Shown: piece by piece, positions 1-44,190 of the stretch
Numbering within the stretch: position 1 is the stretch's first letter
Layout of the letters: the number at the start of each line of letters is the position of its first letter
NCBI GenBank assembly: GCA_051530055.1
Contig: CM121342.1
Span: 15,701,480-15,765,479 of the forward strand
Origin: Neoechinorhynchus agilis
Taxonomy: Eukaryota; Animalia; Acanthocephala
Reading direction: 5' to 3'
DNA length: 64,000 bases
Position numbers and translations under genes: made by a program
The notes under the pieces: model-generated
Seen by the model: only the letters and a program-made list of their open reading frames with translations
Database searches by the model: none
What the model was told of the DNA's origin: nothing

Positions 1-2804
1 ATCTCAAAAGCACGTTCAACTTCTTCAAGCGCTTACTTGGTCATCGATTCAACGACATTGAGCAGTCAGAACTTCCTCATCTTGAATACGAAGCCATCAA
101 AGGCGAAGGAGGCGCAATTTGCGTCAAAGCCGAGTTCGGTAACGAGCGGCGAACATTCTCCATTCCACAAATCCATGCAATGATGCTCGCTAAGCTCACT
201 TCATCTGCCGTTCATGCTTGTGGTCTTAGTGCAAACATCGAAATGACCGATTGCGTCCTCAGTGTCCCCGTCTTTGCTACCGATATCGAAAGAAGAGCTC
301 TTCTCGAATGTACTCGAATCGCCAACATAAACTGTCTACGTGTGCTGCCCGACACCACTGCTGCTGCTCTTTGCTACGGTCTATATCACCAAGATCTTCC
401 TCAACCGAACGAAGAATCAAGACTCGTCGCTTTTGTCGATATCGGATACACGAGTGTGCAGTGCGCTGTAGTGGCGTTCAATCAGGGACGCCTAAAAGTT
501 CTAGGAGTGTCTTATGATGCTAACCTTGGAGGAAGAGATTTCGACCGAGCGCTATCGCAACCTGTCTCATGTATAGGCGATTCGGTAATTATCCCTTATT
601 CATCAATACAATCCGCATCTTCTTTAGTTACTGTTGTTCATACGAACATCTAAGATTTCATATCGACGGATGGCCGCCGATTCTACGCATTTTCGACTTT
701 TCTTTTTTCGCTTTTTGACCGGGAAATGTAATCTAGACCGCATATTCTTTAGTTACTTTTCAAGAGAACATCTAAGATTTCATATCGACGGATGGCCACC
801 GATTCTACGCATTCTGAACTTCTGGCCGAATTCCTTTACTTTTTCGCTATGGGGCGGGTTGCCATAATGTTTCATTTTAAAGACGAAATTCAAAAGGTCA
901 GAGGAGTGGACATTAGCAAAGGCAAGCGGGGCTGGTTGCGCTTAGGACAGCAATGTGAACGAATTAAAAAGATGATGTCCACAATTTCGGCGATTGTTCC
1001 AATTGATGTTGAGTGTCTCGTTGAGGGCGAAGACTACCATTCCCAAATGTGCCGTAGTGACTTTGAAGACCTTTGTGCTAATCTATTTGATCGGATTAAG
1101 AAGACAATGTCCGACGTTCTGACAAATGCTCAAGTCGAGAAAGTCCACTCAGTTGAGATTGTTGGTGGTAGCACTAGACTGCCTCGAGTAAAAACATTGA
1201 TTCGTGAAGTGTTCGGACACGAGGCCAGCACTACTTTGAACGCCGACGAGGCCGTCGCCCGTGGATGCACTCTGATGTGTGCAATCCTTAGTCCGAATTT
1301 CAAGGTACGAGAGTATAAAATCGAAGATTGCCAACCTTATCCAATAACAATCTCATGGAAAGGATCCTGCGAAGATGAGGACACTGAAGTTGAAGTTTTT
1401 AACCATCGAAGCTCAGTACCGATGAGCAAAATGCTTTCCTTCTATAAAAGCGAACCTCTAGTCCTCGATGCTAGATACTCTTATCCAAATGACGTCCCTA
1501 TCGGTGAGAGTAGAATCGGTCTTTTCAGAATCCACGATATCGTTCCAGATTCTAGAGCCTGCTTGCTCTCTCAAATATGAATTTCATTTTATAGCTAAAG
1601 AATTGAGTTGCCACATTTTAATGGGCGATTCGGTCACAGTGGCGATACCACTGACGTCACTGTCGGTTCTTTCGCGCGTTCTCCTCGTTCTTCGATAAGA
1701 TTTCGCTTTCCTCTTCTCTTTTTTCCTTTTCCATTTGAAGACCAAGCATGCTAAAAAGGAAACCCTTCAAAGGTGAAAGTAAAAGTACGAATCAATCGAA
1801 ACGGTATTCTCGAAATAAATCAGGCATTTCTGGTTGAGACAGTAGAGGAGGAAGTTCCAACTTCATCTGAACCGGCCGAGCCTGCTGTTTCGGCTGATGA
1901 TGCGGCTGCTGCTGGTGCACAAAGTGAAGATCAGAATTCTGGTTTACCTCAAACCATTACTGAAGAGGATAAGAAAGTGAAGCAGAAAGTAAAAAATCAT
2001 CCTTTGACTGTAGTGGCTAAACCGACCTTTGAAACTAATCCGGATAATCTTCTTCGATTGATTGAACAAGAGGCGGAGATGCAAGCGATGGATAAACAGC
2101 AAAAGGAGCGAGCTGATGCAAAGAACGCCCTTGAAGAGTACATATACGAAATGCGGGATAAGCTCGGGTCTTCATTGAGTTCGTTTGTCGGTGCCGACGA
2201 CAAGACTCGGTTCAGTCGGCTACTTAACGAATCGGAGAAGTGGCTACTTGACGACGATGAATCCGAAGTGTGTGAAAAGAATGTGTTTGTGAGCAAATTG
2301 AATGTACTTAAATCCATGGGGGATCCAATCAAAAAACGTGCTTATGAGTTCACTCATAAGACGCCGGCGTTTGAGAAACTAGCTAAACAAATTCAGTTGT
2401 TCGAGAAGGCTTATCATTTGTGGTCTACTAAAAAGTCCTACCAGCATATTAGCGAGGATGAGATGAGCAAGGTTATGAAAGCCATTGAGGACAAACGGCG
2501 ATGGCTGTTTGAAAAACAAGCACAGTCCGCCGCGGTTAGTCCAGAAAAAGATTGTACGGTTTTCAACGTGGCAGCGATCAAGCAGCAACAGGCTGATCTT
2601 GAACGAGTATGTAACGGAGTTTTGAACAAACCAGTTCCACCGCCGCCGCCACCACCAAAGAAAAAAGCTGATCCGTCTGAAAAGACAATAAACGATTCTG
2701 CTGGAACAGCCGACAATGGAAAAGGAAATGCGAGTGATGAAGGATTCGCTCAACAGCAGCAGCAGCAACAACAATCAATGGACGATGCAATGGACGTTGA
2801 CTGA
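1..2804 (+). CDS. HSPA4: HSP110/HSPA4-family Hsp70 chaperone (5' partial), interrupted by two non-canonical insertions (555-866, 1555-1755)
   Basis: Motifs FKRLLG, LRVLPDTTAAALCYG, LGGRDFD, VEIVGGSTRLP, TTLNADEAVARGC, KVKVKVRIN, ERADAKNALEEYIYEMRDKL; C-terminal poly-P/poly-Q tail ending MDVD; no other stops or frameshifts in the exons. Confidence 0.93.
555..866 (+). other. Non-canonical intervening sequence 1 (312 nt) in HSP110: TA direct repeat plus terminal inverted repeat
   Basis: TA at 553-554 and 865-866; ends tcgcaacctgtctcat / atggggcgggttgcca pair at 15 of 16 positions (3 G-U); removal gives FDRALMFHFKDE. Confidence 0.85.
1555..1755 (+). other. Non-canonical intervening sequence 2 (about 201 nt) in HSP110 with terminal inverted repeat
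   Basis: Follows TA 1553-1554; agcctgcttgctct pairs with agaccaagcatgct; removal gives IVPDSKGNPSKVKVKVR; exact junction uncertain by a few nt. Confidence 0.75.
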
Positions 2805-3675
2805 ACCGATCGCGTCATTTTTCTCGAAGAGGTTCCTAATAAATCTGACTGCGACTTGAAGAAATCATCAAAGTGACTTACGCGTAATGATGTTAAATCG
2901 GTGTCAATTCCTTTGTATGAAATCTTATACGATTATTACCTCTAAGACTGAACGCGTATGTCCCATGAGCGTATTCAAAGGTAATGATGAAATAACGGAA
3001 GAGCCGTTTGAATGTACTTACGCATTCTGATGATTTTCCTCCTTCTGAACCAACTGACGTTAACATTGAGGTAGGTTTTGGAAGCGAAATCAACATTATT
3101 GGAAAGGGACTGATTTTTTCAGTCCGTCTCCATTGAAATCTATAGAAAAGTTTCCGTTAGCTCGCTTTCTTCGTTTTTCAAGGGATACGAATTTTTGCTA
3201 CAGCTTACTCGATGCCCATGATAGCCATTTTCATTTTCGAAGTTAATATGTTTTCGCAACCGGTGATTATGGGGTGCATAGTGGCGAACGGCCATATAAC
3301 ATCTTAAGGATCCAATATCTTCATCAAAACTAAATACAACCCAGAACAACTGGGGAGTCGGCTTTACACACAAAACGAAATACAATACCTACTTGTAAAT
3401 ACCAACGAAGAAATGGCCGTATTCCATCGCTTTGAAGGCGACTCCATTACAATATCGAGATGTTATGCAAAATGTTTCTAATTACTTGTCTCAAATCCTT
3501 GAAAAATGAGCTCCGCAGAATACGTTCAATCTTCTATTTCGGTGGAACGTTCAAAATACAATTTATCTGCAGTGACGTCTTGCGACAATTTGAAAATTTC
3601 ATTGTCAAACATTAATTAGGAGGATCCTAAAAAGTTATAGAAGAGATTTTGATGCGCAATCTTTGTTTGCGTAGT

Positions 3676-3730
3676 CCGAAGACATCCATTCTCTCGAAGT
3701 CCATTCCCTCGAAATCCATTCCCTCGAAAC
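3676..3730. repeat. Short tandem repeat, about 15-bp unit x3
   Basis: tccattc(t/c)ctcgaa repeated three times. Confidence 0.7.
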
Positions 3731-5280
3731 CTTCCACAAGAGAGCAGCGAGAATATGCGGGACTTCACTCCCTCCCCTCGACGCCCACCTGCACTCCATT
3801 TTCTCCAAAAACGCCCTCCGTCTTCTTCAACCCCCTCCACAATTTTCTTCGTTCATCTCTAAATACTCGTCCCTAGTAAACACCCGCAACCCCAACCTTT
3901 TTCATCCCCCCCTTGCTCGTACCACCCTCTACCAAAAATCTTTCCTAACCCAAGCCCAATCTTTCCTTAACAACCGGAAAACAAGGAAAGACTCCCAATC
4001 GGTCATCTCCTGTACAAAGCCTCCGATCGCACATTAAAACTCCTTCAAAGACAAGTCCCACCTCCCTTGCCTTCAACATCCGTCATCCAGGCACCTTCAG
4101 CAAAGGTAGATGCTGGCTAGTGTATGGATCGTTCTTTTCTTAAATTAATAAAACGTGTTTATATTATATAATGCTCTTATTACCAACAAGCTCGCGTCGG
4201 ACGATACTCCATTTGGCGCAGGCAGCGGACTCCCAAGCAAAATCAGTCGGTTCGATCACTCCTAGACCTAAAAAACGTTAACTGACATGTCGCTTAATGC
4301 CGCATTTTCTTCTCCTATAATTCGACGACTTACTTGGATCTGTGCTACTGGCGGAGAGCGTTTGGCTCGAGCATTCGGCATGAACTCAAATTAGTGCATT
4401 ATCTTGGCACGCTACATGATCTGAAATTGCGGAATGTCGAGAGTAACCAACTTTGATGTAAAAATTTAAGATCATCTCGTTAAACGTTCATCTTTTTAAT
4501 CTAGCCATCAGGTTTTTCTGTTCACAGAATGCCAACGCTTGTCTATGGTGGACACGTTTCTGGCTACCTTTAGTAACAAATTTCTCACGACAATGACGCG
4601 TGTGGGATAGTCTAATCTCTGGCTCAAACTTTTGTCACTACAAGGAAGGCAAATGATGAGGGCCATAAAAATTGAGGGGGCACTGTTTTATCCACTTAGA
4701 TGAGAAACGGATAACTTCCATCGCCTCGTATTCCACATAAAAGGTGGTATACGGTTTCCCCAAAACGTTTTCGACCTTGGCAACATGCAGCCGTCTGTGA
4801 CAAACGCGCTGAGCGCTGAACATGCTGGAGGTTGTTAAAAAAAGCCCAATTTTCCATTTTACCACCTAAACCTTTTAATGCAAGATCGTGCGATATCGTT
4901 CTATATTGCAAATCTAATGATAAAGCATCTACCAACGGGCCTCCACCTGTCTAAAAGCAACAAATGTAGTTGAATTCACAACTATGGTTTTCACCGCACA
5001 GGTCGTGATTGCAGCTTCTGTTGAAGAATGGTCTGATATCGACATAGCTTATGACATCTTAGTTAAACAAAAAAGTAAAAAGGTGCGCTTAGCCATTCTC
5101 GATTTATGAAAGGGCGCTCACGAAATTCACAAATGCATCGATCACAGATGCCATGAGTTTTTAGCTAGGAAGTCAGTCCTTACGGCTACCAGAGAAATTA
5201 TCTCTTTATTTCAGAGTGATACCAAATTTATGAATATAGTGATAGCTTTGAACATATTCCTGACGGTAGATTTTCCATCT

Positions 5281-5420
5281 ACGGACATCTCACTACAGGA
5301 TATTCCCACCCGAACGGACATCCCCAGACCGGGTGTTTCCACGCGAACGGACATCCCCTGACTGGATATTTCCAACCGAACGGACATAACCAGATCGGAT
5401 ATTCCCAACCGAACGAACTT
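5281..5420. repeat. Minisatellite, about 33-bp unit x4
   Basis: Repeated ggatattccca(a/c)ccgaacggacat units. Confidence 0.8.
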
Positions 5421-6955
5421 CCTTCGACCTCACCAAAATCGCAATCCATAGTTTCAATCCAACATTGTTTATCGGTCAAATAACGATTACCCTATCTTCA
5501 TAAAAACAATGCCACAATGAGGACCCAAAATTAAGTGGTTCCAATTTTTTTTAACAAATCAATGAACGTGTTGTTATTACAGTAGAGTACCCAAGGATCT
5601 TCTCATTCACCTATACTGTTTTGTTTGACCACAAGAAATCACATTAAACGCCAACGGTAAGAACTAGTTTATCATCGTTGCATTTTTTTAGTTAATAACT
5701 GGGCTAGACCTTGATCTCAGAAAGACTGAGTTCATTTTAAACTCTCGTTCCACCGTACGGAAACGTAAGATAAGATAATTTTACATGGGATATTACAAGG
5801 TGGATAAGGTAATCATAAAAATAGAAATTCCAAGGCAAATTCAAGCATTAAGAGCGTTATAAAAAATCTCAAGAAGCTTTTAAAAGTGGCACAGGTCACC
5901 TAAAATCAATCTGGAACTCATGCATCTTGTGGGCCTCGTTTTTTGCTCCAGAGACTGTTAACCTGAACACCTCATAGCACTTACCAGGATCATGACACGG
6001 ATTAATTGATAATTTCCGATTGACAGTTGCTGTTTTCCGAAACTAGATATATATTTTTCTTCCAAGTTGTTGCTTTTGCGTGTTAATCCGTTCGCCCGGC
6101 ACTGTGTGCTGATAAGCGGTAGTGACAGGTGCGTGGATTCTAGAGGAAATATAATTGCATGTACGAACAATGATGAAATCAATGGAAAATGTCGTATGGA
6201 ATGCCACACACACATAGCGCTTCTCTTGGTGTTTCTATTGGTGGAAAACTATTTTTGTAAATATAAGCGTCAAATCGCGATGTCGGTATTGCGATTTTCG
6301 TATGCCATCGCATTTTGCTACCGGATAATGTTTGATACTACTAGCGTTTAAAGCTGAAATGGAGATTAACTCTCAAAATCACCAACTTTTGGTTCGCTCT
6401 CTTTTTTTGTAAAGTTTTTACGATATTGCCCTGAATTTAAAACGCAAATACAATCGAGAATCAATCGAAATTTATAATTAGATTTCATAGCTAATCACTG
6501 TTGTCCTTTTTGTTGGATAGTGGTATTGATATCCATTTTCCCTTAAGGGACGCATCTTCACCCATATACACCCCTAAGATTGAGTTACAATTTTTTAAAG
6601 GATGGAAATAGTAGAGCACAATATCATGCTTTAACTAGTCATTATCGGTAAGATTTATGTTGCATGATGATTACCGAATCCGCTTTTTGTGAACGCTACG
6701 TCGGAGGAGAATGATGAAAAGTGCTGAAAATGATGATGTTACAATGGTCGAATTTCGTCAATGATGACCTGGCTCAAGATTCGAGCTGAGGACAGAACGT
6801 TTATGTCGATATCGAATTCGTTAACTATGTCTTTTACAATACTCTTGATAAAACAGTCAGATCTTTTTTGAAATCGAAATAACTTTTGAGTTTTTGATCA
6901 CTGCGATTTAATATTCAAGCGTTAATCGACAAGAATTCCTAAAATTACTTTCCAG

Positions 6956-7780: not shown

Positions 7781-8250
7781 TTGCAAAATTTCCAGTTCAC
7801 ATAAGCCACTAAGAAAATGACATTCTTTTAAGTCTGGCGCTATTTTGTATAATCTGTGATGTATAGTTTCGCTGTGTAAACAATCGCCCTGAATTTGAAA
7901 CGACATCAATGATTTTAATGCATATTTCTTAAAAATTAGTATTGGGATTATGTAACGCTTATCTAAATCCGAATTATCCGTTTAGTTATTATGTTTAGTA
8001 ACAACGATTGCATTTTTCGCCAGTGTTCTGACGCGTTTAGAAACACCCGAATCAACTTCTTGACTCTAAATAAAGTTTCTATCAGTAAATGAGTGTCTTG
8101 CTATATTCCAACAATGACATTTCTTCAATCGCGGCGTCAAACAGAGAAAACAAACGCACTTCATTTACCAAACAAAAGAGCTTGTAGCTGCTATGAAAAC
8201 CGATGATCACGGCTCAGTGATTTTGCTCAGTTTTTGTTTGTCTGCGCGGC

Positions 8251-8505: not shown

Positions 8506-8629
8506 CAACCAATCTGAAACGAAACGTATACACAAAAAAATAACAAAAGACTGTTCGCACATGATTTTGCTTCCAAAAATCACACAGATCTAGTATATAA
8601 AGCGAAAACCGTACGTGTACCATCGAGAC

Positions 8630-9908: not shown

Positions 9909-9981
9909 GCATTCGTAGTGTAGTGGTTATCACGCCTGTTTCACACGCAGGAGGTCCTCGGTTCGATCCCGAGCGAGTGCA
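9909..9981 (+). tRNA. tRNA-Val(CAC)
   Basis: Acceptor stem GCATTCG/CGAGTGC, D arm gtagtgtagtggttatcac, anticodon loop ttCACac, T loop ggttcgatcc. Confidence 0.93.
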
Positions 9982-10293
9982 GGCCAGAGCGAAACTCCTT
10001 TTAAATACAAAATATTCGAGTTTGCGACTAGTAAAAGTCAATTTTTTTAGAACGCACTATCGTAAGAACGTTCGAATGAAAAAGTTTATGGGCAATTTAA
10101 AACACTATTTTTCGAACCCGACACAACATCGGGTTTGCGATCTTTCAGCATTGCGCTCAGATACTATTTTTAAAGCTCATTTTTACACTGCAGCTTTTTT
10201 ACTCAAAGAAGTTTACGCTTGTGCTAAAAAGCCAAAAGAGCTGTGAATTTTACAAGCTCTCCTTTTTTGCAATTTTGTCTAATAGATCTCAAA

Positions 10294-12840
10294 ATGAACG
10301 AATTGCATGTTCATCGGTCACCTAGTCGGCTTTACGTCTCACGGTCATCAGATGAAAATACAAGAGCGTCTTTGTCTGTCCATTGTTCAACTGGGACTGT
10401 CAGTATAAAGTCCCTTCCAAACTCCGACAAGGTGCTGGTTTCATCCGATGTCGAAGGCGTTCTCGGTCTCGCTAAGTTGGTCGTGGATTCGTATTTGGTT
10501 CTGCTAAAACGCAGTGAATTTGTGTGTTTTTTGGCTGAACATTCGATTCGACGGGTCGTCGAGGTCGACTTTGTTCCTCTCACTCAACTGGACCGAAAAG
10601 ATGCGGACGAACCGTACATGGAAATGCTACGAAATAGATTATCATCGAAAAATATGTACTTCTCATGGACTCATGATCTTACCCGGAACTTTCAGTCGAT
10701 CACAAAGCATCCCGATGTGCACCCTTGCAAGTCTCAGTTCCTATGGAACTCATTTATCCTTCGAGAGTTTCAATCGGAAGAGATGAGACCTTTTGTTGTT
10801 CATCTCATCAGTGGACTCGTGGCCCATGATGATATCCAATTATGCCAGCCGTTCGCAACTAGTGAATTCTTTTTCGAATAATAACGAATAATTAGTTCTT
10901 TTAAGCGAAGAAGTTAAAAAGTATTTTCTTTTTCTCTTAGTTTTGCCACTCCACCGGATTCAAAAATTCACTAATTTATTTTCCCGATATTTCACCTCTC
11001 GGATAATTCGGACTTTTCATCTCAATGTTTGCCATTGTTAAACTATTTTATGTGCGAATAAAAGACTTTAACAGCGACAAACCTTAAGAGGAAATGTCAG
11101 AATTATCCGAAAGGTGAAATATCGGGGGAACAAATTAGTGAATTTTTGAATCCGGCCGGGTTGCAAAATCAAGAAAAAGAAAGTATCTTTTCCCCTGACG
11201 ATAATAATCCAATACATAAAAAGTATTTCTCAGCTTGTTTTTTACTAAAATGCTACTTCTAAGAACAGTGTTTCTATTCATTTTCAATTATTATTGAGTA
11301 AGTTCTAGCAATCGAAAACGATAATCTTTTTTAATTGAAAGTGGTGAACTGCTGGATTAGATGGACAAATTGTCAATTATGTCCTGATATCAAGACGATC
11401 ACACCGAAGAACTGGAGCTCGGTACATGTGCCGAGGAATAGACACAAGTGGTCATTGTGCCAACTTTGTCGAAACGGAGCAACTGATCATGTACTCGTCC
11501 ACAGACAAATCCATGCTGTTTTCTCATGTACAGGTCCGAGGATCGATTCCGTTGTTCTGGCGGCAAACTCCGAATCTCATGTATAAACCCATCCCAATCT
11601 TACTGCCTCGAAACCACACTGCTGCATGCCGACTTCATTTCAAAGAATTGGAGAAGCAGTATGGAGATGTGGTAGTTGTGAACCTTATAGACCATAAAGG
11701 ACCCGAGAAAATGTTAGAAAATGGTTACCATTCTATGGCACAGGAATTGTCCATCCCATAAACCAGCATGTCCTTGTTCAGTCTTGAAACGGTACATCTC
11801 TTTATTATAAAAGGTTCAGATCAGTTCACGTCAACACTTGTCTTATTTTCTTTGAACAAACGCCCGAATACAAATCAATTTTTTAGCCTTTTTTCGCAAA
11901 CATTCGGCTTAAATTGAAACCGAAGTTTTCATCACCTAATATTACGGTGCCTAGTTTAAAATTCGAAATTGTCGCATTTCGTTCTAGGAGGTCTACTTTT
12001 GTAGCTCGTAGCGTGTCCACCAGCCCTTTGCTTACGATGTCTAAGAGAGCCAAGTACATGCTGGCTTACATCAGCTTCGATTTTCACGGCCGCACTGGTC
12101 TAAAAGGTGTTGAGCAGTTTGAAGTTCTAATGGCTGAACTTAAATCTTATTTGGAGAGCAACGCGTACTTCCAAATGGACTACGGGGATAAACAAGTTCT
12201 AAAGGAACAAAATGGAGTGGTTCGCACAAATTGCATTGATTCTCTAGACAGGACAAATGTAATTCAATCGAAAATCGCCATGCGTATCCTTGAGCATCAA
12301 TTATCTGATTTGTCGCTAATTGAAAGAAACTTTCCACTTGAAAAACTCCCACAGGTTCATGGAACTTTAGTAAATATATGGGCAGACAATGCGGACACTC
12401 TTAGCGTGGAATATTCGGGCACTCCAGCATTAAAAACGGATTTTACTCGAACTGGAAAGAGAACGCTTCAAGGATTGATGAATGACGCTCGATTCTCGTT
12501 GCAGCGCTACGTCTTGGGGAACTTCTATGACGGATTCAATCAAGACTCGTTTGACCTCTTGCACGGTACTAATGAAATTGCACTGGCCGACTCCTCTTTT
12601 GATTCACTCTTAGAAAGGTTAATCAACAGTAAGCTGATAATTTTTCCGGGAATATCCTTTATATGTTCTCTGATGGTTCTTTTTAACCTCTTGATAGGTG
12701 ACTCGCCGTCACAAAATGAACAAGTTAACATGTTATTTTGGTTCGCTGGTTTCGGAGCAAGCATTTGTGCGACACTCATGTATGGAGATGATATAGTCGA
12801 TCATCCAAGGCTTACTTATAGAAATCCTCCAGATTTCTGA
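10294..12840 (+). CDS. SACM1L: Phosphatidylinositide phosphatase SAC1, interrupted by two non-canonical insertions
   Basis: YFSWTHDLT, LISRRS, RGIDTSGHCANFVETEQ, QVRGSIPLFW, catalytic RTNCIDSLDRTNVIQ, YSGTPALKTDFTRTGKRT, two C-terminal TM helices. Confidence 0.95.
10843..11359 (+). other. Non-canonical intervening sequence 3 (517 nt) in SAC1: TTA direct repeat plus terminal inverted repeat
   Basis: TTA at 10840-42 and 11357-59; ccagccgttcgcaact pairs with agtggtgaactgctgg; removal gives GLVAHDDIQLDGQIVNYVLISRR. Confidence 0.85.
10921..11190. mobile_element. Palindromic MITE (family A), nested in SAC1 intervening sequence 3
   Basis: Long inverted repeat ccggattcaaaaattcactaattt / aaattagtgaatttttgaatccgg; second copy at about 51035-51280. 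Confidence 0.8.
11761..12068 (+). other. Non-canonical intervening sequence 4 (308 nt) in SAC1: TA direct repeat plus terminal inverted repeat
   Basis: TA at 11759-60 and 12067-68; aaccagcatgtccttg / caagtacatgctggct pair at 14 of 16 positions; removal gives ELSIPYISFDFH. Confidence 0.88.
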
Positions 12841-14915: not shown

Positions 14916-17597
14916 TTATACAAGTTTATCATGTGCCATAAACTTTTAGTTGGTTAATTTTAATCTCTTCTGTTTCTGGACCCTTTCCATTTTTACCCAT
15001 CAATGATACCTCGAGAACCCAAATGCCTTCGGGGTTTTCGCCCCAACACCTATTTGTCCCAAATGGATGTTCATGTATTCCTTAGATTAAAAGTTTAGTC
15101 TAAAGGAAAAAATAATTTCGCTGACCTTTATCGCTGTGATCTTCCGGTCTATAATCTAGTAAGACAGATAAGGTTCCTGCTGGAGAGGTGACTGATATTC
15201 GAGTCCCTCCTCTACTATTGGTATTTAGAGTTAAGGTAACAATGAAATGTTCAAGTCTTTCAACTTCACATTCGGCTATTTTAAGAAGCCAGCGGACAAC
15301 TACGACATCTTCATCTGTCCTTTTCAGCCCAAAGTTTGCGAAAAGATTAACGAAATACACAAACCTTCGTTTTTCAGCGGATACAGTTTCAAATTTATTG
15401 CACTCTTTCCTATCGGATACATGGGTCCACTTGGCTCCAAGCTCGATCATTGCATCTGCATCTAATGTGCCGAATCCTATGTAGTCATGAACGTAGTACC
15501 CAGCGCCGTTCACCGTCCATAAATTGTCCGGAGTTAAAGGAACACGGGCAGTTTCCACCACAATATGCATTACGTCTCTATAGGTGAGCTCAGGATTGGA
15601 TTCCAGCAACAATGCAAATATCCCAGCGGCGATCGGAGCCGCTGCTGATGTCCCCTTGAAATCGAACACGCATGTATCAGCACCTCCGGTAGTGCAAACC
15701 CCATAGTGGCGCTTCTAAACATTGTTTCGGACCAACCGTCATTTTGAGCATGAAAATTATAATGGTTTTTTAAAGAAATTTTCGAAAATGAGCTGAGAAA
15801 CAAATCGAAAAAAAGAGTAATCATTCTTGATTCTCTTATAGTTTTTTGCAAAAATGTCAGGGTTCACGCTAAATGCAATTTATATGAGAGAGAGCGAAAC
15901 CGGTGAAAAAATGGGTTCATACTCAAAGCCATTTTACCTTCGTTTTGGAAATTCCCTGGCCCGCGTACGTAGCAGCCAGAATGGATGATCCAGCCTCGTC
16001 GTAACTCTCGTGCCAACCCAATTGATCAACGGATGTTATAGTGAATATATTTGGATTAGAAGTGTAGCCGTCCGCGCCACAATGGTCTCTCGCTCCTCCA
16101 TTACCAGTTGCCCAAACGAAAATGGTACCGCGACCATGCCTTCCCTGAACAAACAATTTGTTATTCAATTCTGAGATCAATACCAACCCTCTTCACGCCG
16201 AACTCAATAGCCTTGGAAGCCATTGCTGTTGGTTTTTCCATTGTTTTCCCGTTATCCACTGGACCCCACGATAAACTCTTTATATCTATCAAAGGATTTA
16301 AATAAGATAGGGCCCGCGATTCCAGGAGAGAATTGACTCTTCCATCGAGCAATCGAAATCCTTTTTGTTATACATTTTTGTTTTAGTTATGCCTGTTAAA
16401 GCAGTAGCAATGCATACCTGCAATTGATGCTCCAAAAGCTACGCCGACCCCACATACTCCATTGTTGGCTTCAGCAGCAGCCACTCCGGCGCACTTGGTA
16501 CCATGACTAATCATAAATGGTTCACATAAGAATAAGGTGAAATCAATGCACCTGTACTTTGCGTTTCTTGTGTCGGGGCTGGGATCATGATCTATATCAT
16601 CAAGGTCATTAAAGTCAAAACTTAGTTCCGGTCTCTATATAAGGACATTACTCCTTCTAAATATGAATCAGGTAGTCTTACATATCTTTCTCGAAGATCC
16701 GGATGTCTATGATCGAGACCATCATCAATAATGCATATAGTTACATTTTTGCCACTTAAACCACGACTCCAGGCCTTTTGAATGTTCATGTAGTCATATC
16801 CATCATGTCCCTTTAAGAAATTGCACATTAGTTGAATAAATTAGTTTCAATAAAAACACTCACCAGTGCCCACTGTTCTTCGTACATCCAGTCATTAAAT
16901 TCAATCCTTGGAAACCGTTCTAATTCATCCCCGAAATGAAATCCGGCAATCTGAACAAGGATAAAAATTAGTTTGTGAAATGTAGTTAAAAATCTGTGAC
17001 CGAATGAATAAAATTGTGTAAGCAAACAGGAAATCGTTTTCTTCTAAACGCCGCTCATCCCTTTACTTTTAAACTTAGTTCAAATCAGTTCAATACGCCA
17101 TGGATGAGCGAGGGTCTTAGTGCGTATAGACGAACATGCACTTAAAATCAATAAAAATGATCCTTTAATGAACTCCGAACTCAATACGCTGCATGTGTAT
17201 ACCAAAGGCCCTTTACGTACCCTTTTCTCGATGAGCGGCTCGTTTTGGATTAGCGATGTCAAAGCTGACCTGGCTAAATGCGTTTCATTGGAACCAAAGA
17301 ACTTCCGAAAATGCCATATATCCAATCCTGCAACCTAAAACGAAGTTTGCCAAACTTGGGTCTTTAAACCGAATCGATCACCCGCCCATAACATGTGAGA
17401 TTATGCCGCGTTCCAAATGTCCTAGCGAACAATTTAGTATCGTAAAGTCCTATGAATTCAACGCCAAAATCCACGTAGTTCGTGTTGTTATTATCGATCT
17501 GTTTATTGGTATAGATTTGTTCGTCTTTTAAAACTGCCTTGTCCAAACCAAGCAGGAGTGTACTGTACGCCATAAAAGATTTAAGTCGAGATTCCAT
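14916..17597 (-). CDS. Kexin/furin-like proprotein convertase (multi-exon)
   Basis: Catalytic D (IIDDG), H (HGTKCAG), oxyanion N (GNGG), S (GTSAAAP); P-domain ([20 protein letters not shown]); signal peptide and propeptide; mostly short GT-AG introns. Confidence 0.92.
17045..17117 (-). other. Non-canonical intervening sequence 5 (73 nt) at the convertase propeptide cleavage site
   Basis: TA at 17045-46 and 17118-19; perfect 9-bp stem cgctcatcc/ggatgagcg; removal gives SIRTRRKR (or RTKRKR with a 1-nt shift); upstream exon phase not fully resolved. Confidence 0.6.
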
Positions 17598-19143: not shown

Positions 19144-19160
19144 CGCCCCCGGGTGGGCTC

Positions 19161-19215
<55 letters not shown>

Positions 19216-19217
19216 GC
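19144..19217 (-). tRNA. tRNA-Asn(GTT)
   Basis: Reverse complement gcctccgtggcgcaatcggttagcgcgttcggctGTTaaccgaaaggttggtggttcgagcccacccgggggcg. Confidence 0.96.
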
Positions 19218-21510: not shown

Positions 21511-24500
21511 ATGGCTGCAATGATCGCAATCCTCGCAATCGTCTCAAAACAAACTAACGGATATACACTCAATCCAATCCCGTTTGCTGTTCTGAAACCG
21601 CCTATCGATCATCCAGGTCCTCCTATGTACTTTGGATATGCTCAAACACAAATAATAGATCGCGGAAGTTTAAGGTGCGTACTTTAAGGTAATACAAATC
21701 AGAATGTCGGACGTCTTTTTATAACCAACAAACTGATGATGAACCCGACGAGGTTCGCAGAACATCTTCAATAAAAAAATATTGACCGATATTTTGCTGG
21801 GGTTATTATCCTATAAGAAGCCTTATCACAAAAGAAGAGTTTACAAAGAATTATAGTATTTAAAAACATGCAAACAGCATTAGAAAATTAAAGCGTTTCA
21901 GCGTTCGTTGCTTATATCTTGCAATATTTCTGGCTTAATATATACATTTAAGTCTTTATAAACGATAAAATTCGAAATATGAGGTATATGTTTTTAACAT
22001 TTAATCCGCTATAAATCTTTGGGATCTTTGGTAAATCACTTAAAGGTTTTTCACTCTGATAATGAGATCTCAAAAACGATTAGTAAGAATTTGTCACGGC
22101 AAAGATTGGGAGTAATTGTGCGAGATTTAGGTCACCATTTTCTATCCATTTGGAGAGTGCTTTATCTTGACGAATGTATTAAATATTCGAAAGTGCAACT
22201 TAATTTATTTTGCATCCTTAATTTTTTATGAGTAAAATTTCTGATTTATTGTGCTTGCATTCTATAAAAACATTCGATTTTCGATATTGTGACCTTTGGT
22301 GAAGATAATTCCGGTTAAAAATCATTTTATTTTACTCAAATATTTCGAAAGAGGAAACCTCGCCTTATCAATCATTGTAAATAAATCAAATCGACTAGAT
22401 GTCAATTGGGTTTTTTGAAGATGCAGAATTCGTGCTTACAAGCGACTAAATCGAATAAGCAAAAACCTTTTGAGATATCAATAATTGCTTTATCTATAAG
22501 GGATTGTATTGGACTAATAGACGAAGACTGACCTCACGTAAAATAGCTCATTCGATCTTTTAGGATGCTCATAAGTGCTCCGATAACTCGAACTCTTTAC
22601 GAGTGTTCAGAAACACAATGTGAACCCTTTCGATACCCATTTGAGCACATTTCAGCATTCAGTCTTACTAAAGTTGACAGTAGTGACAGTTGGTTTGGTG
22701 CCAGTATGGAGAGTGTTCGAAATACGAGCGTTGTGGTGAGTAGAACTTTCGTTTTCAGATCTAATCGCTCTTAGGTCTGCGAACCTCGCTTAAAACACGT
22801 TTTCAATCTAAGCCTATCAAACGTTGCTTCAATACGGATCAATGAGGAAGATATGCCTGGGATTTGCCATCTTTTTAACCTCAAAGGTCCCAGCAATCAG
22901 TTGATAAAAACTCCCGGGTTATTCGATTGGAGTGAGTGATTTTTTATACATAGCGTTCGCCTTCATGTGCTTCTATAGATCTCCAGAATTTCAATAAGGA
23001 AGGGTTCGGTCTATTCGGATTCTCAATAGCGTTGTCCCACGTACGTATTCCAATGAACATTCATGATTGAAGATCCTCCTTTTTAGAATCAAAATAATTT
23101 AATTGTTGGTGTACCTGGTTCATACTATTTCCGAGGTATCACTATTTTCTCTCAAATTCGTATTTTATTTGCTTAAAAGGACAAATTTATTCGATTCCTC
23201 TGGGGAAGAGCGATGAAATAGTCTTGAGGAAGAAAAAGTGGGTCAGGGTGCCCGAACGAGAATCTGACGATTATCGAGACGATTGGTGCTATAGAGGATA
23301 TAAGGTGGTCAGTCTTGAACTAACGGATAAACGATTGGAAGGTGAAAATCAAACGAAGGCATTAAGTGGCCTTTAGAGTTCAAGTTCTTAATTTTTTTGT
23401 TAAGACCCCTCCAGAGACAAATGTAGCGGCAAATTTCGCGCCATTTTCTTCGGTTTGGTTTGTATCACTGCGTATCCAAGCGCAGGTTGTATTCGGGTGA
23501 GATATGAAAATGTCAGAAGATCTGCCAAACCGCGATAAAATCAATGATATTTTCTAAATTGCCCTCAGGTGAACTTGATGATAAAGGTGGTGCATTAGGT
23601 GGCTCTTAACTTAAGGATAAAGTAGAGATACTGGCAAAGAAATGTTAAGTAGAAAAGGGTACATGCGACGGTGCTAATTATGATGAATGTATAAAACGAA
23701 ATCCGTTTGGATCGATTTAAACTTACCATCAAATCGTTTACCCCATAAAGAAGTTAGAATCGAGTCTTGGAACCTCCTTAGGGGCTAGAGGGGCTATGCC
23801 AAGAAAATAGGAAATCACATTTCATTTTTGTAAGTAGGAACGGCGGCATCAGTCCCACGTCTTAGCAACTACACCGGCGCAGTTGAAATTTACAACACAT
23901 CCCTTTCATTAATCTCTTCAATCCGCGGTCATCAGGTACTCGCCTTATTTTAATAATGTTAGTTTTTATCGGATATATTCCCATTATATAGGTTGGATCT
24001 TATTTCGGCTATTCTTTACTCAGTGTAGATATCGACGGTGACAGGTAAATAAACACTCACACATAAACAGGTTCACTCACTCTCACTTAGTCTGAGTGAT
24101 TTGGTGATCGGATCCCCATTCTTCACCAATGGAGAAATCTACGATTGCGGTCGGATCGACGTGTACCGCCAGAACACGAACGGAAACTTTATGCATTCAA
24201 CTAAAGTAATCGGTAAGGTTAGCCGCGGGCGATTTGGTTCACATTTGGAATCAATTGGAGACGTTAATGAAGATGGATTTCAAGGTTTGGTAACGCTGTG
24301 AGTAATCAGTTGTCGAATGTGAACGTAGATCTGGCTGTTTCTCAACCATACGGTGAATCGCCATCGGTTCACATTTTCTTCGGATCTTCTGGTGGGCTCG
24401 TTAAGGATACTAAACAGGTTATCAAACGCTATAATCTTGTTTTATGGTTACCTTGGCATTGCAGATTATCAAATCCGACAAAGAATCGTTCGGATATTCG

Positions 24501-27500
24501 TTGAAATCTTTCCAAATGAACAATAATTCCATTCTTAGTGTATCTTCCATCAAATCAGACGTGGTTTATCTTTACCGGTGAGTAAAGTCGAAGTTGTATT
24601 GCTCATATATAAAATTACCAATTCTGAATGTATTTTCCCTTAATTTTTTAGTTGACTTTTGCGATTCATAATTTTTGGGCTAGTATTCAAATGTCTGAAA
24701 CAGAATTCATAATATCCAGGTACTGGTGCAGTTTCTCACAAAATCATTGCTTGTTCATCTAATACTGTTGTAGTACTTCTTTGTAGAACCTTTTTCAAAT
24801 AATAAACAGTATTGCATGCACGTTTTCTCTTTTGTAAAATAATATTTGACTTTTTTTACTTATTGAAACTTGATACACCGCGTTCTTTTTTCTCACTTTA
24901 CCAGAATCGTTATTAACATCTTTTCTTATATAAGAACAAAATCGATATTGAGCATTGAAAAAGGCGTTATATTTACGCCCAACCATATAACTCCTTGGAC
25001 CAAAATGTTCAATATAACCATATGCATGAGATATCGTGGTTCTCGCTTGCCTGAATCGGTTTTATTCCAATCATATGCTCTTCTCGATGCCAATTCAAAG
25101 CTGCCACCGCGTCTCGTCTTCGAATCGAATGAACGATTGGAGAACCTAACAATCTCTCTCCAACGTTCAAAACTCTCGTGCTTCACGTTGCATGCTAAAA
25201 TAAGTACCAGTGGACTCGTCGACAAACTCAGTCCGGTGAAATTCGTATTTAACTATAGTCTGTCGGTCGGTTACGATAAAAATGTCGTACTTAATCAATC
25301 ACAGTCAAATCATTTGGAATTGGAGGTTTGTTTGGTGGATGATGGTTTATGGAATGGAACTTTGATGCTTAGTATTTAGATTCCAATCGAGAAAAGCTGC
25401 GGTGCGGATGGAGTCTGTGTTCCAGATTTAAGTATTGTGATGAAAAGGTATGCCAGCCTCATATATTTAAAGCTTTGGCTTTGTTTTTAAATGAGCAAAG
25501 CATTACACTCATTATGAAGGTTTCGTAAATAGTAGACACCAAATTTTAGATTATCCAATCTGTGCCATTGGGTTCCATTGTATTTATAGTAAAAAAACCC
25601 ATAATATTAATCCTATCGTTCAAAAAGCTCAAACAAATTGCTAAATCATAATGTGATAAAATTATGAATCCAAAGACAAGAGCCATTAGCTATCATTACT
25701 TTGCTTCAATAATAGACCTTCCACGGGTGATGTTTTAATTAAAATAACACTCAATTGCGCTTGCTTATTGCACTACCCTAAACCGGTGAGTTTTTAAAGT
25801 GGTTAGATTAATAAAATGTAATCAGAGTCGCTCTAAAAAAGTAAATCCGATGAGACAGTGATTTCATCACAAATCCCAAAAACGGTGATTTATTTGTAAA
25901 AAGGTCCACAACTTCCACTTTTAATTTTGTACTGTCTATGCTCTTCAATGCGTCTTATTTAGCAATGTAACCCGCTATAAGTACTCTCCGCGGAATCCCT
26001 TGAATGTGTCTATTACAGTAAGAAACCAAGGAGAAGACGCATTTGAATCAAAATGTGTAATTCAAATGCCTCCTTTTATTCACTTGACTCGGATCACATT
26101 CGCAGTGAGTTACTCCTTGTTTTCGATTTGCAAAAACCTTCCTTTTCCTTTGATGTTTTAGGATGAGCTGGTCTGGTGCGAATTTAGCAATTTCGGCGAG
26201 AATAAGACATTGCTTTCCTGCGACTTAGGGAACCCGATGACATCCAATGAAAGCAGACTTCTCTGGATTCAGCTTCAGCCAACAGTACCCGTTGAAACAC
26301 TACATTTCATCGCCAACACATCGAGTAAAAACGCAGAGTTGACCGAAAACAGTATGAGTGATAACATTTTTAAACTCAGTGTTCCTGTTGATATCGATAT
26401 GAAATTGAATCTTAAAGGTCATACTGAGTACGACCAGATCTACAGTGGGCTTAACCGATCACATGAAATCCAAGTGATGGACGATATCGGGAGTGCGGTT
26501 GTGCATGTTTACAAAGCCACTAATGCTGGACCAGTGACCATAAAAAAGATGAAAATGGTCGTAAGATGGCCCAGTAGGACTGCTGACGGACTACATCACC
26601 TTCTTTACTTATCGGAGCCTCCAATTCTATCGAGGCCACAGACGAGAGCTACACGTGACTTTTGTGAAGTCAGTACGGTGTTTCCCACGGTTCCTGCCGT
26701 TAATCCACTCGGGATTATGAAGAAGCGGAGTCCAGAAGAAGAAGTGATAATAATCAAAAGAAGAAGATTTCATACTTTAATTGATTGCCAAATTTTCGAC
26801 TTGGAACCCAATGAAAACGTTCTATTGAATATCCGGTCGAGACTATGGGAACAAACAATTCCTTTGGTGAGTTTCGGAATACTAGGCGATGCTATATGCA
26901 AGATTTACTATTTATAAGAAGCACTAGAAGATTGTAACGGCCCAAAGCATCGACCTACTTTTTATTGACTTCGAATGATTTCTAATGCTGAAATTCTACC
27001 TGACGTCCACAAGTAATGGTCATTGAATTTGATTATCTCCCTGCGCTTTATGAACAATGTAAATCTAATTTAATTCAGTAGAACGATTACAATTACTCTA
27101 AAAAGATGATATTTCTCCGCTTAGAAAGCATCAAGAGATTTATGGTTTTTTGCTTACAAAATTCATATCTTGTTCATCGCATTTTTTGAAATCAAATATG
27201 GTAAGAAATTTGAATATTATTTTGAATTTTGTATTGGTGTCGTTGTTCCTAAAAATTCGCTGATTTGGTGCTTAAAAAGTCTTTATTTTGGCGTGCCAGA
27301 ATTTGCTTAACAACGTAAATTTTTCTTCACGTCTGCCTGAAGCACTATATCCCCTCACTTAAATGAATCGTACAAATAAAATTAGACGCTTTTCAATTCT
27401 CTCCATTTAAGCTATTGTCTCCTGTGGTAAGCATCATGTCGGAATGCGAGATTCGAATTCTGGCAGCCCACACTTTCAATTCAACAACGAATGAGCTTGT

Positions 27501-27881
27501 AAAGAAGGCACAAGTAGGTACTTATTTAAGCTCAAAACGGAATAAAAGCCTTGAATTGTGCAGGTAGAAACGGTCGTATATTCCGAAAGTAGAGCGATTT
27601 TAACAGCAATGCCGGATCTTTGGGTCATTATCATCGCAGTTTGCACTGGAGTTTTGTTTCTATCGCTACTCGTTCTGACGCTATGGTGCTGTGGATTTTT
27701 CCGGCGGATTCCTAGACACTATGGGCGGTATCATGTTATGGATGTAAAAGATGACGAAGATGACCGGATGAAGAGAATCATGACCAACGATGATAGCGGA
27801 TGCATTCTCAGGGCCTATGAAAGGCAAATGAGTGGTGGAAATGTTAGATGTCCACTAAGTGCTAACAGTACTATTCTCTGA
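21511..27881 (+). CDS. Integrin alpha chain (many short GT-AG introns)
   Basis: Signal peptide, FG-GAP repeats (YFGYA, YFGYSLLSVDIDGD, DLVIGSP, RFGSHLESIGDVNEDGFQDLAVSQPY), calf domains, TM helix followed by GFFRR. Confidence 0.92.
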
Positions 27882-28857
27882 ACGCCAAAGTCAATGCTGT
27901 AAAATACATTTTTGAACTGTAAAATAAAGAAATCTCAGTCACTTGAAGCTCATGTTGATAATAAGAATTTTCCTTATCATGATTCAAATTTTTGAGAAAG
28001 TAAGAAGGATGTTCTTGCACACACAAAATGCGTTTATCGAATAAAATGGCAGTTAGTCACCCAAAAGCGTTGCAAAACTTAACTTCAAAGGCAATATAGT
28101 AAAAAACTAAAAAGTTGCAAAACTTAAAAAAATTAATTGCTGCTGATTGCTTGATATTTCGTTGTTTGTCTTAACAAAGTTGGTCATTTTTCAAATCTAT
28201 AATTCATCATTTACCGACGAAAATTGCCTCCATCACCAATAATCTATCAGGTTACCACGACGAACGTCGAAAACTGCGAAAAGGCATAGCTGCGAAGGGT
28301 AAGGGACAAACTTGACTTCCTTACTGTTGAAGATGTTCGTTTATACGAGCAATATGACAGCACGGATGAATCAGAAAAACAGGAGGCTGATGATTGTGAA
28401 TGCTTCCACAACGAAACGGAAACTGATGTTAGACCCGTGATCGGTCTTTGAATCCTAGTGTAGTAGGAAAACTTTCAGCATTCAATTGGCGCCAAAGGTT
28501 TTCTACAATATAATTTAATGTCAAAAAACCAACGGATTCGTTCATGTGCGACAACTCTTTGTCGTTCTTTAACGTCCTAAATGCTTTAAGTTGTATAATT
28601 GGAGCACTTAACACCACGCCGGATATGCTACGCACTGGTGCAAATGAATCACACCACAAAGCAAATGGATCTTTTTCGTGCAGTCTAAAAATGTGCCACC
28701 TCCCGTTCGAAAGAGCCATCCACCTCTTAATATTAAAGACATCTCGTGTAACTTTATGTGCACAAAGATTGCGCTCATACGACGACACGAATCTTGTTCC
28801 CCAAAACCAACAAGTGTGCGGATCAATCGGATAAATGGGGATTTAGTCTTTCTTGCT

Positions 28858-30573
28858 TCATATATCGGCCACTTGACCATTGCCGTTCTCAGAACCTCCA
28901 TTAGTCTCCCTTTGCTGCTTACGCTTTTCGCGTATCATCCTTCTCAACTCTATCGATTTCGATGGAATCGCCGCCGCCGCAGCCGACGACGACGACGAGG
29001 AGGAGGAAATAGCAGGTTTCGCATTTACAACCTTGTCTCGCTGACAATGGCCAACTGTAGTCGAAGATAGCGACGACGTACCAGACGATGAAAGCGTTTC
29101 AATCTCATACGAATCGTTATGCTGTGCCTTTTCCTCCACCGGTTTATCGGCCATTACCTCTTCAATGCAATCAAATGATCGGTTACATGAGTCAATCTGA
29201 GTCTGCAATACGTCCCAGTAACCGGCCAAATCATTTCCCGTAGTAAGTGGCTTGTCTTTTGATGGACACATGTTGTCATAACACAATTTCCTAACACTGA
29301 AAATGCTAAGTCCAATAAATGAACTTAAATACATATGAAAAAGCAATGAAAATACCCCGTATCCCGACCGGTTTCACAGAAACTATAAAAATCAATATAC
29401 TTACCGTTTCACCAGTTATGGTTTGGACAAAAACCTACTTGGATTGACACTGGTGGAATTTTTTTGCCTAGTCTTTTGCGAAACTATACTGAAAAGACAT
29501 CTTAGCAAACGTGTTTTTTTTCAATTGGCAAAATGTGAGGACCCGACGAGGGTCTTTAATAAAAAATTATTCACCCTGGAAAAGAGACTTCTAAACAATA
29601 CCGGATAATTTCTTTAAACCCCGGACACAAGCAACCCCGAAAACTTAGCAATTTCAGCCCGCTAAACTGTTCCATTCTCTTAGCCATTAGAAGTCTCGAC
29701 TGACCAATGGCTGCCTGAATGCTTCCACAAAGTTCCTCCTTATCACCCGAATCGGCCTGGTCGAGTAATATTATCTCATAATTCCTGCATCGCCGGTCTA
29801 ATCTATCGTATGCGGTATCTAACTTCTGCAAATACTCTATTCCGGCGGAGCAATCTCCACCATTTTCGCTACTATTGATGTCCATGACTGTTTCGGGGAC
29901 CGTCGACTCCTGCTGTTTTTGATCGTCAGAAGAAGTCTAAACGAAGATTATGAACAAAAACACTCAAAACAACCACATTCACGCGTTCATTACTCACAAA
30001 GGATGCCTCAACTTGTGGCTGTGTAGATGCCGGCAGCTGCTGCTGTTGTTGTGGAGCTGATGGATACGCTTTTGAGGAGTACCCGTTGACGAGACAAGAA
30101 ATACGCAGGTTTGATTGCTGACGGGCGTTTATTTCCCTTTTTTCGCTATAGTACTTAGCTTTGATCAGTTCGTATTTGCGATCAATGTCTTCATTATTGG
30201 CCTTCAATTCTGGTTTTGATGAAGGCTCCATTGGTTGCAGCGGCGGCGGCGACAGTTGTGCTGTGACGACCGAGAGTTTACTTGGACGACGCCAAAAATG
30301 AGGCTTTTTTGCCGCTTTATCAGGTGAAGACGAACCACTGAGACTTTGTCCGCCGGTTCTACGGGCGATCTTCTGTTTCAACACGTCGAGGAGACTAGTA
30401 CTCTTTTGTAGCTTAATCGGAGGAACCGTAGCCGAGACTGTTGTTACTGGTGCACGTAGAGTCTGAGACCTCGATGAAGAAGAGTATTTATGGTCGACCG
30501 GATCCTGTTGAAGATTCGTCGTCGAAGACGAAGCCTTCTGACGATGAGAATTTCGTCGAAACAGAAAACTCAT
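28858..30573 (-). CDS. DLGAP/GKAP (GH1) domain protein, interrupted by a non-canonical insertion
   Basis: GSIQAAIGQSRLLMAKRMEQF...LCYDNM...TGNDLAGYWDVLQTQI...IRRMIREK-like segment match the GKAP homology domain. Confidence 0.82.
29293..29663 (-). other. Non-canonical intervening sequence 6 (371 nt) in the DLGAP gene: TTAG direct repeat plus terminal inverted repeat
   Basis: ctgaaattgctaagt / acttagcattttcag pair at 14 of 15 positions; removal gives EQFRKLCYDNM. Confidence 0.83.

Positions 30574-38880: not shown

Positions 38881-44190
<5,310 letters not shown>

Follow-up and report, generated by a model that had tools for sequence, protein, structure and literature searches.

Hairpin-ended inserts in three conserved genes of the acanthocephalan Neoechinorhynchus agilis as probable transposon-like nonconventional introns

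How can conserved genes of the acanthocephalan Neoechinorhynchus agilis hold, in the midst of their coding sequence, inserts of 201-517 nucleotides (nt) that have complementary ends and no terminal dinucleotide common to them? This question is raised by a 64-kb stretch of chromosome CM121342.1 (GCA_051530055.1; from here: the window, whose first base maps to about 15,701,484 and whose positions are used throughout), in which HSP110 (1-2804, plus strand) and SAC1 (10290-12840, plus strand) each contain two such inserts and a GKAP/DLGAP-like gene (28861-30684, minus strand; from here: GKAP) contains one. A previous sequence-only reading of this DNA had singled out these five inserts and a sixth segment, in which base +n of the terminal stem pairs with base -(n+2), and had suggested that the junctions are defined by this hairpin geometry, in likeness to the nonconventional introns of euglenids or through a non-spliceosomal endonuclease. 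From the sequence and its comparison with relatives we propose, with a probability of about 0.65, that the five inserts are transposon-like insertions taken out of RNA as nonconventional introns, guided by the pairing of their ends.

The first insert of HSP110 (insert a; 555..866, plus strand, 312 nt) is listed here as a nonconventional intron. Its junctions carry the direct repeat TA and allow three equivalent placements, 555-866 (TC..TA), 554-865 (AT..AT) and 553-864 (TA..CA). The terminal stem joins GCAACC at 557-562 to GGTTGC at 857-862, and the interior holds a tandem duplication (613-699 and 738-821) with 86% identity between its halves. Excision yields DRAL|MFHF, which aligns gap-free with DRAI|MIRL of a relative at 64% identity and with rotifers. 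Insert b (1555..1755, plus strand, 201 nt), likewise listed as a nonconventional intron, can be placed at 1555-1755 (GA..AA) or 1554-1754 (AG..AA), with a single A as direct repeat and with TA and AA as flanks. Here the stem pairs 1556-1565 (AGCCTGCTTG) with 1743-1752 (CAAGCATGCT) at 9 of 10 positions, and a pyrimidine tract precedes the 3' end by about 25 nt. Excision of insert b gives PDS|K|GNPSKV, in which an invariant glycine is kept and which is gap-free against relatives (PDSKGNPS vs PDASGNPS); both HSP110 junctions also align without gaps to rotifer and annelid HSP110s.

With both inserts excised, HSP110 reached a family-profile score of 978.0 bits, compared with 969.4 and 959.6 bits for GT..AG alternatives at insert a, 968.1 bits for a GA..AG variant of insert b (1555-1758) in which the invariant glycine is lost, and 891.4 bits for the deposited model. 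The latter keeps 48 amino acids (aa) of insert a and uses GT 1504..AG 1758 at insert b, dropping 18 conserved residues (GESRIGLFRIHDIVPDSK). According to the sequence-only reading, the stem register alone would select the junction that restores the frame at 1555-1755; this could not be upheld, since by our own reading other in-frame pairs at the same stem are equally plausible (D-S-R-G-N or D-S-K-G-N), while an alternative in-frame junction at the stem of insert a gives DRAIMFHF. As a separate observation, ACCGATTCTAC occurs twice in the repeat unit of insert a (677-690 and 798-811) and shows complementarity to GTAGAATCGGT of the exon downstream (1507-1520), which is where the deposited model placed its false donor. 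This complementarity is probably a chance 11-mer.

In SAC1, insert a (10843..11359, plus strand, 517 nt) is listed as a probable nonconventional intron. Five equivalent placements exist, from 10839-11355 through 10843-11359 (TG..TA at the latter), with the direct repeat ATTA. Positions 10845-10854 (CCAGCCGTTC) pair with 11346-11355 (GAACTGCTGG) at 9 of 10 positions, and a foldback repeat with 80% complementary arms is nested at about 10917-11215. Excision of this insert restores the frame. Insert b (11761..12068, plus strand, 308 nt), listed as a nonconventional intron, can be placed at 11761-12068 (AA..TA), 11760-12067 (AA..TT) or 11759-12066 (TA..CT) with TA as direct repeat; its stem (11763-11776 with 12051-12064) is paired at 13 of 14 positions, corresponding to a score of 11 and P ~0.0003 on the scale explained below. 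Read-through into insert b meets TAA at the junction, and its excision gives ELSIP|Y|ISFDFH, carrying the family motif Y-x-x-FDFH.

The profile score of SAC1 with the hairpin junctions was 495.2 bits. At insert a, a GC..AG junction at 10844-11360 (which changes D to Y) reached 493.8 bits and the deposited GT..AG junction at 10862-11360 (which adds 6 aa) 487.7 bits; at insert b, the GC..AG alternative 11738-12045 stayed 1.7 bits below (493.5 bits). These GC..AG alternatives match the hairpin inserts in length and have the poor donors GCCAGC and GCACAG. The deposited annotation breaks SAC1 at insert b into two products, one 322 aa and the other 244 aa long. The best match of the spliced SAC1 protein was a hypothetical protein of N. 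agilis (98% identity), and the remaining matches had 32-39% identity. Both SAC1 inserts have CAG at +4..+6 and CTG at -8..-6, within a common CCAGC/GCTGG, and they may share one inverted-repeat core.

The GKAP insert (29291..29661, minus strand, 371 nt), also listed as a nonconventional intron, has the direct repeat TTAG and five equivalent placements, from 29661-29291 (CG..AG) through 29665-29295 (TT..TG). Its stem connects 29657-29643 with 29311-29297 at 14 of 15 positions. The excised form reads MEQF|R|KLC, with Q-F nearly invariant across 13 homologues and MEQFRQLC in the closest relative. In the deposited model, where GT..AG at 29667-29297 is used, the stretch reads MEHVRKLC, making this model the sole aligned sequence without QF. 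Profile scores were 160.2 bits for the hairpin junctions vs 147.2 and 143.4 bits for canonical alternatives.

Taken together, the removal of exactly these five segments aligns the proteins without gaps to two relatives, one at 64% and the other at 58-65% identity, as well as to rotifers, and the suggestion that the five intervene in coding sequence was borne out by the restored reading frames and conserved residues. As canonical alternatives, every in-frame GT..AG, GC..AG and AT..AC pair within 75 nt of each junction was listed, and the relevant ones were profile-scored. For HSP110 a, HSP110 b and the GKAP insert these alternatives were rejected, being worse by 8.6-87 bits (HSP110) and 13-17 bits (GKAP). 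U12-type AT..AC junctions were rejected as well, as matching ends of the right length were missing.

All six segments noted before have complementary ends. With the coordinates of the sequence-only reading the +n/-(n+2) pairing holds throughout, the outermost pairs lying at offsets (5', 3') of (2,4) and (1,3) in HSP110 a and b, (2,4) and (2,4) in SAC1 a and b, (4,6) in the GKAP insert and (5,7) in the sixth segment. Stems were scored as matches minus twice the mismatches over 48 allowed offset combinations, with length-matched random segments of the window as the null. In the same order, the scores were 6, 7, 7, 11, 12 and 7, which random segments reach in 1.7%, 0.5%, 0.5%, 0.03%, 0.025% and 0.5% of cases, and 20 canonical GT..AG introns of the window serving as control (9 of a kexin/furin-like gene, 10 of an ABCC gene and 1 of a Rab gene) scored only 1-4. 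The stems of the five inserts span 6, 10, 10, 14 and 15 positions with 0 or 1 mismatch. Minimum-energy folds, computed for three inserts with 10-nt flanks, were all closed by the terminal stem; otherwise the inserts were not unusually stable (z = -0.6, -3.0 and -1.0, the value of -3.0 being that of HSP110 b).

The sixth segment, a 73-nt foldback at 17044..17116 on the minus strand, was rejected as a hairpin-type intron. It is located inside canonical intron 2 of the kexin/furin-like convertase gene (17597-14930, minus strand), a 270-nt intron with the ends GTACGT..TTCAG. An alignment with furin, together with reading the gene directly, shows nine introns in this gene, all of them GT..AG, and no direct repeat was found at the boundaries proposed earlier for the segment. 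Of the two minus-strand segments thought to share the register, both show the offset of 2, but only the GKAP insert remains as an insert in coding sequence.

Does the register define the junctions? The direct repeats at the five junctions are TA, A, ATTA, TA and TTAG (2, 1, 4, 2 and 4 nt), with TA contained in four of them, and they create 3, 2, 5, 3 and 5 placements that give the identical mRNA, so that an offset of 2 or of 0 is possible for all five. The coordinates proposed before correspond to the rightmost placement throughout; there the offset is 2 in every insert, whereas a shift by 1 nt to the left makes the hairpins blunt and a shift by 2 nt places TA at the start of four of the five introns, the blunt placement leaving the mRNA unchanged. 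The register is compatible with the sequence but is not the only solution. Moreover, the unpaired distance on the 5' side varies between 1, 2, 2, 2 and 4 nt in the rightmost placement, and a varying distance from helix to junction is a poor fit to a nuclease that measures from the helix. A match of the 2-nt 3' extension to the product geometry of RNase III, as had been suggested, is thus not sustained. A constant offset of 2 would be expected if symmetric inverted repeats lay between the two copies of a 2-bp duplication (in the five inserts TA, TA with mutation to AA, TA, TA and AG). It is possible that the junctions are set by hairpin geometry; an origin by transposon insertion accounts for the same facts.

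The CAG/CTG signature, which had been named as the hallmark of euglenid nonconventional introns, is present at +4..+6 and -8..-6 in the SAC1 pair only. HSP110 a has CAA/TTG there, HSP110 b and the GKAP insert, with CCT/ATG and GCT/AGT, lack it, and apart from the CCAGC/GCTGG of the SAC1 pair the inverted-repeat sequences differ among the inserts. According to our own reading of the 3' ends, a pyrimidine tract is present near the 3' end in the two HSP110 inserts and not in the other three.

Several observations bear on origin and age. At the positions of the HSP110 inserts no intron was found in Owenia (an annelid) or Adineta (a rotifer), and the nearest Owenia intron is 12 residues away from SAC1 insert a; the location of these three inserts at positions that are intron-free in relatives points to lineage-specific gain. 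SAC1 insert b (12066-12069) lies 1-3 nt from a phase-2 intron in the orthologue of Owenia fusiformis (at R|Y in ..IRYESFDFH; L005 48629 / ~51140). This proximity can be within chance, with an estimate of about 25% for at least one of four inserts lying this near. The foldback nested in SAC1 insert a has a second, non-coding copy at 51033-51270 (also 51280-51456), and the copies of this family are 67-87% identical. The inserts are old, judging by the mismatches in their inverted repeats, the decay of the nested foldback and the divergence within the internal duplication of HSP110 a. Since the flanking reading frames of 762 aa and 573 aa are free of stops and frameshifts, selection would have continued with these old inserts in place, which would require that the inserts are removed. 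In the protein searches, N. agilis was represented by a single HSP110 model and a single SAC1 N-terminal model, each forming a one-member cluster, and no transcript-derived HSP110 or SAC1 of N. agilis was found in the protein databases searched; a word-indexed protein search for GKAP gave no hits. The affected genes appear to be single-copy and otherwise intact.

From this evidence we infer a transposon origin of the inserts and their excision from RNA. Short elements with terminal inverted repeats, similar to miniature DNA transposons, would have entered continuous coding exons of N. agilis long ago, in most cases at TA and with a short target duplication. In the pre-mRNA, the paired inverted-repeat ends would place the exon ends side by side, and excision of the element together with one copy of the duplicated bases would bring back the original frame. 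The +n/-(n+2) register would then be a geometric footprint, arising from symmetric inverted repeats when a 2-bp duplication is counted on the 3' side, and no particular nuclease would be needed to explain it.

Other results weigh against this proposal. The excision and the exact junctions are deduced from protein conservation only, and in both SAC1 inserts the GC..AG alternatives are just 1.4-1.7 bits lower, a margin at which homology alone leaves GC..AG junctions possible. The direct repeats provide modest evidence, as repeats of at least 2 nt are expected by chance in 17% (P = 0.17) and of at least 4 nt in 2% of cases, and canonical introns have 0-6 nt. HSP110 b has TA on one side and AA on the other instead of a clean duplication, and the symmetric reading of the GKAP insert gives AG, not TA. 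Mobility is shown for the nested foldback only, and a second copy of a whole insert was not found in the window for any of the five. When the window was scanned blindly for segments that are closed by a hairpin and whose removal fuses open reading frames, no further convincing members emerged and the 2-nt register was not enriched; these scans were swamped by chance stems of 6-8 bp and chance reading frames. One scan candidate, 25635-26193, was rejected because it would remove a real integrin exon.

It is improbable that the inserts are ordinary U2-type introns with rare or degenerate sites (GC..AG, GA..AG, CG..AG) in which the transposon hairpins are incidental. Such introns could use the 3' AG available in three inserts (SAC1 a as GC..AG 10844-11360, HSP110 b as GA..AG 1555-1758 and the GKAP insert as CG..AG) and the pyrimidine-rich tracts of both HSP110 inserts, and there is a precedent in the tunicate Fritillaria, where non-canonical introns derived from miniature inverted-repeat transposable elements (MITEs) are removed by the U2 spliceosome (PMC13326754, PMC11282704). 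However, HSP110 a has no AG in the ~90 nt upstream of the 3' junction that homology requires, SAC1 b has 12045 as its sole length-matching AG acceptor, combined with a weak GC donor at 11738 and 1.7 bits lower, and the GA..AG junction of HSP110 b costs the invariant glycine and 9.9 bits. The 5' ends of the inserts are unlike U1-binding sites and nothing like the strong GTAAGT-type donors of the 20 canonical introns. Quite improbable, too, is a cut at the helix base by an RNase III-like or other non-spliceosomal endonuclease that leaves a 2-nt 3' overhang, followed by exon joining through a ligase. Such an enzyme would explain why the 3' side is longer by 2 nt in all five rightmost placements, why terminal dinucleotides are not shared and why a polypyrimidine tract is missing from three of the five inserts, and euglenid nonconventional introns reportedly leave as full-length circles without a lariat (PMC11282704). 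Yet the 2-nt offset vanishes in all five when the placement is moved by 1 nt with the mRNA unchanged, and inverted repeats with a 2-bp duplication explain it without any enzyme. RNase III enzymes cut inside the duplex at a measured distance, whereas the junctions here are in unpaired bases at variable distances of 1-4 nt (5') and 3-6 nt (3') beyond the helix. The bulge-helix-bulge motif recognized by the tRNA endonuclease was not seen in SAC1 b, the sole insert checked, by eye, in which the required 4-bp helix between intron start and 3' exon is absent.

Two further explanations dispense with removal from RNA. If the inserts were retained, the genes would be disrupted alleles, pseudogenes or insertion polymorphisms, with the function supplied by another haplotype or copy. 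Foldback repeats are abundant in the window, making insertion plausible; still, we give little credence to retention, because more than 1,400 codons flanking five insertions in three conserved genes contain zero stops, frameshifts or indels, the elements are decayed and therefore old, a second HSP110 or SAC1 protein of N. agilis was not found in the searches, and the neighbouring genes are intact. Precise developmental or somatic excision of DNA, comparable to the TA-bounded internal eliminated sequences of ciliates, we consider most improbable. In Paramecium, the eliminated sequence is removed exactly with one TA, and three inserts have TA at both boundaries, so that the same operation would restore the gene. 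Acanthocephalan somatic tissues are, in addition, syncytial, with few large nuclei. On the other side, we know of no precise intragenic DNA elimination in animals, the assembly contains the inserts, their ends deviate from the Paramecium consensus TAYAGYNR in our own comparison, and HSP110 b and the GKAP insert are not cleanly TA-bounded.

The reading as transposon-like nonconventional introns can be compared with known systems, among which the introner elements of Amoebophrya and the introns of euglenids are the closest cases. In Amoebophrya, a parasitic dinoflagellate, non-canonical introns with inverted repeats of 8-20 nt and direct repeats of 3-5 nt are supported by RNA-seq (Farhat et al. 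2021; PMC7789003); more than 60% of the introns are non-canonical, many of them in repeated families (PMC7789003). By analogy, the anatomy of the inserts appears to match these elements almost point for point. Shared features are variable non-GT/AG ends, an inverted repeat joining the ends, direct repeats that blur the borders, the lack of a transposase inside, a predicted hairpin that juxtaposes the exons and the presence of canonical introns in the same genome. Unlike in Amoebophrya, the inserts are a minority class in an animal host, their repeats measure 1-4 nt, mostly with TA, and no family copies are found in the 64 kb.

Euglenids likewise have two intron classes per genome, with non-GT/AG ends, and with borders made ambiguous by repeats that resemble target duplications, in the nonconventional class (Milanowski et al.; PMC12501133, PMC11282704). 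Their CAG/CTG motif was experimentally shown to be critical in Euglena (PMC12501133), an origin of these introns from MITEs is suspected, and circular excision was reported (PMC11282704). Late excision, following that of the conventional introns, and a machinery other than the standard spliceosome are likewise ascribed to them. The likeness extends to the spacing, with 3 nt before the 5' motif and 5 nt after the 3' motif, although the absolute spacer varies here, to the exact CAG/CTG of the SAC1 inserts and to a purine that opens the 3' exon in four of the five cases. Unlike in euglenids, three of the five inserts lack CAG/CTG and two carry pyrimidine tracts. The euglenid resemblance noted in the sequence-only reading therefore stands for the non-GT/AG borders, paired ends, junction repeats and spacer arithmetic, but for the CAG/CTG motif in two of the five inserts only. 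As the taxa are unrelated, it would reflect at most convergence or a similar type of transposon.

Fritillaria borealis is the animal case. Non-canonical introns make up about 95% of its total and are removed by an adapted spliceosome, with a duplication of U2AF (PMC13326754); AG..AC and AG..AT prevail among them, and YAY triplets precede the 5' site and close the intron at its 3' end (Henriet et al. 2019; PMC13326754). Apparently lineage-specific positions, inverted repeats, putative target-site duplications, excision that restores the pre-insertion sequence and difficulties in gene prediction are common to both animals, unlike the intron majority, which is canonical in N. agilis. The AG..AC/AT and YAY rule was rejected for our inserts, as it fits none of the five in any equivalent placement. 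Compared with MITEs that target TA (Tc1/mariner, PIF/Harbinger), inverted repeats are present in all five inserts and a clean TA duplication in three (TA, ATTA, TA). By analogy with these systems, a hairpin-aided spliceosome with tolerance for odd sites, on the model of Fritillaria, and a distinct machinery guided by structure, of the sort suspected for Euglena, may be given roughly equal weight. The stronger claim, that acanthocephalans hold a second, structure-guided and sequence-indifferent pathway of intron removal beside the spliceosome, convergent with the euglenid system, seems unlikely to us. In the literature searched, such introns were not reported for Acanthocephala or Rotifera.

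Among the resolved genes of the window, canonical introns are the rule, mostly 43-57 nt long and with GTAAGT-like donors. Besides the nine junctions of the kexin-like gene, about 15 were counted in the ABCC transporter gene and one in the Rab gene, and others are present in the CPSF6-like, SPOUT1-like, MRPL13 and phosphomevalonate kinase (PMVK) genes. The ratio of 5 solid hairpin-ended inserts to about 30 canonical junctions is approximate, the integrin-alpha gene (~21.1-27.9 kb) and one ABCC junction being left out. Further genes of the window are Elf1, PTPS, mitochondrial ribosomal protein L13, the ABCC transporter, eIF4E, a CPSF6-like gene, a SPOUT1-like methyltransferase, Rab, an HP1-like gene and a DENN-domain gene. 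An Rfam scan of the window at the gathering threshold detected two tRNA genes only, tRNA-Val(CAC) at 9909-9981 (plus strand, ~300 nt upstream of the SAC1 start codon) and tRNA-Asn(GTT) at 19144-19217 (minus strand), and no RNA family, including group I and II introns, within the inserts. The remnant of a non-long-terminal-repeat retrotransposon with a reverse transcriptase domain (RVT_1) occupies 36131-38267, and more transposon-like reading frames occur at 60034-60804. Other long inverted repeats are located at 56642-57018, 31653-31882, 53637-53821, 58325-58755 and 45234-45398, none with a clear target-site duplication. The analysis of seven other foldbacks of the window for target duplications likewise gave no clear ones and was of no help in defining the type of transposon.

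Irregularities were also noticed outside of the three genes. At 39752-40482 of the ABCC gene, two exons in overlapping frames (139 nt open in both) have no canonical intron joining them, for which a frameshift, the decay of this divergent gene or an intron of very small size or unusual type may be responsible; a search with the ABCC membrane domain against solved structures gave no match. A perfect palindrome of ~46 T followed by ~46 A, flanked by copies of GTTTATTTTC, is situated at 41959-42121 inside an ABCC intron of ~600 nt. In the PMVK gene, 10 kb upstream of the window (L004 ~5690-5745), a 56-nt insert directly follows the exon of the P-loop (KDYVLCI|AGLLE). With ends that are formally GC..AG, it has the 4-nt direct repeat ATAG and contains an internal, not terminal, 11-bp hairpin; the best GT..AG alternative would remove the P-loop, and both remaining PMVK introns are canonical. 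This insert may be a sixth, atypical, non-GT intron.

On the evidence of their sequence, the five inserts are best filed with a known kind of nonconventional intron, the one that bears inverted and direct repeats, which they would extend to a new animal phylum. If this is true, acanthocephalans would join the tunicate Fritillaria as only the second animal lineage in which transposon-like non-GT/AG introns occur. In contrast to Fritillaria, these would coexist with a large majority of normal introns, as in Euglena, which would make the worm a useful system for studying the recognition of such inserts and the birth of introns. As an unrelated lineage shows the 2-nt register too, the euglenid rule of 3 nt and 5 nt may itself be the footprint of inverted repeats with a 2-bp duplication. 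Should a second removal pathway exist after all, short DNA transposons could colonise coding exons harmlessly. The deposited N. agilis models are wrong in all three genes and at every nonconventional intron (P0121, P0001 with the 244-aa product, and P0241). If this is typical of the genome, it could inflate the apparent loss or fragmentation of genes, and the gene counts and the estimates of missing conserved genes from which extreme gene loss in acanthocephalans has been argued (PMC12256650) could partly be annotation artefacts.

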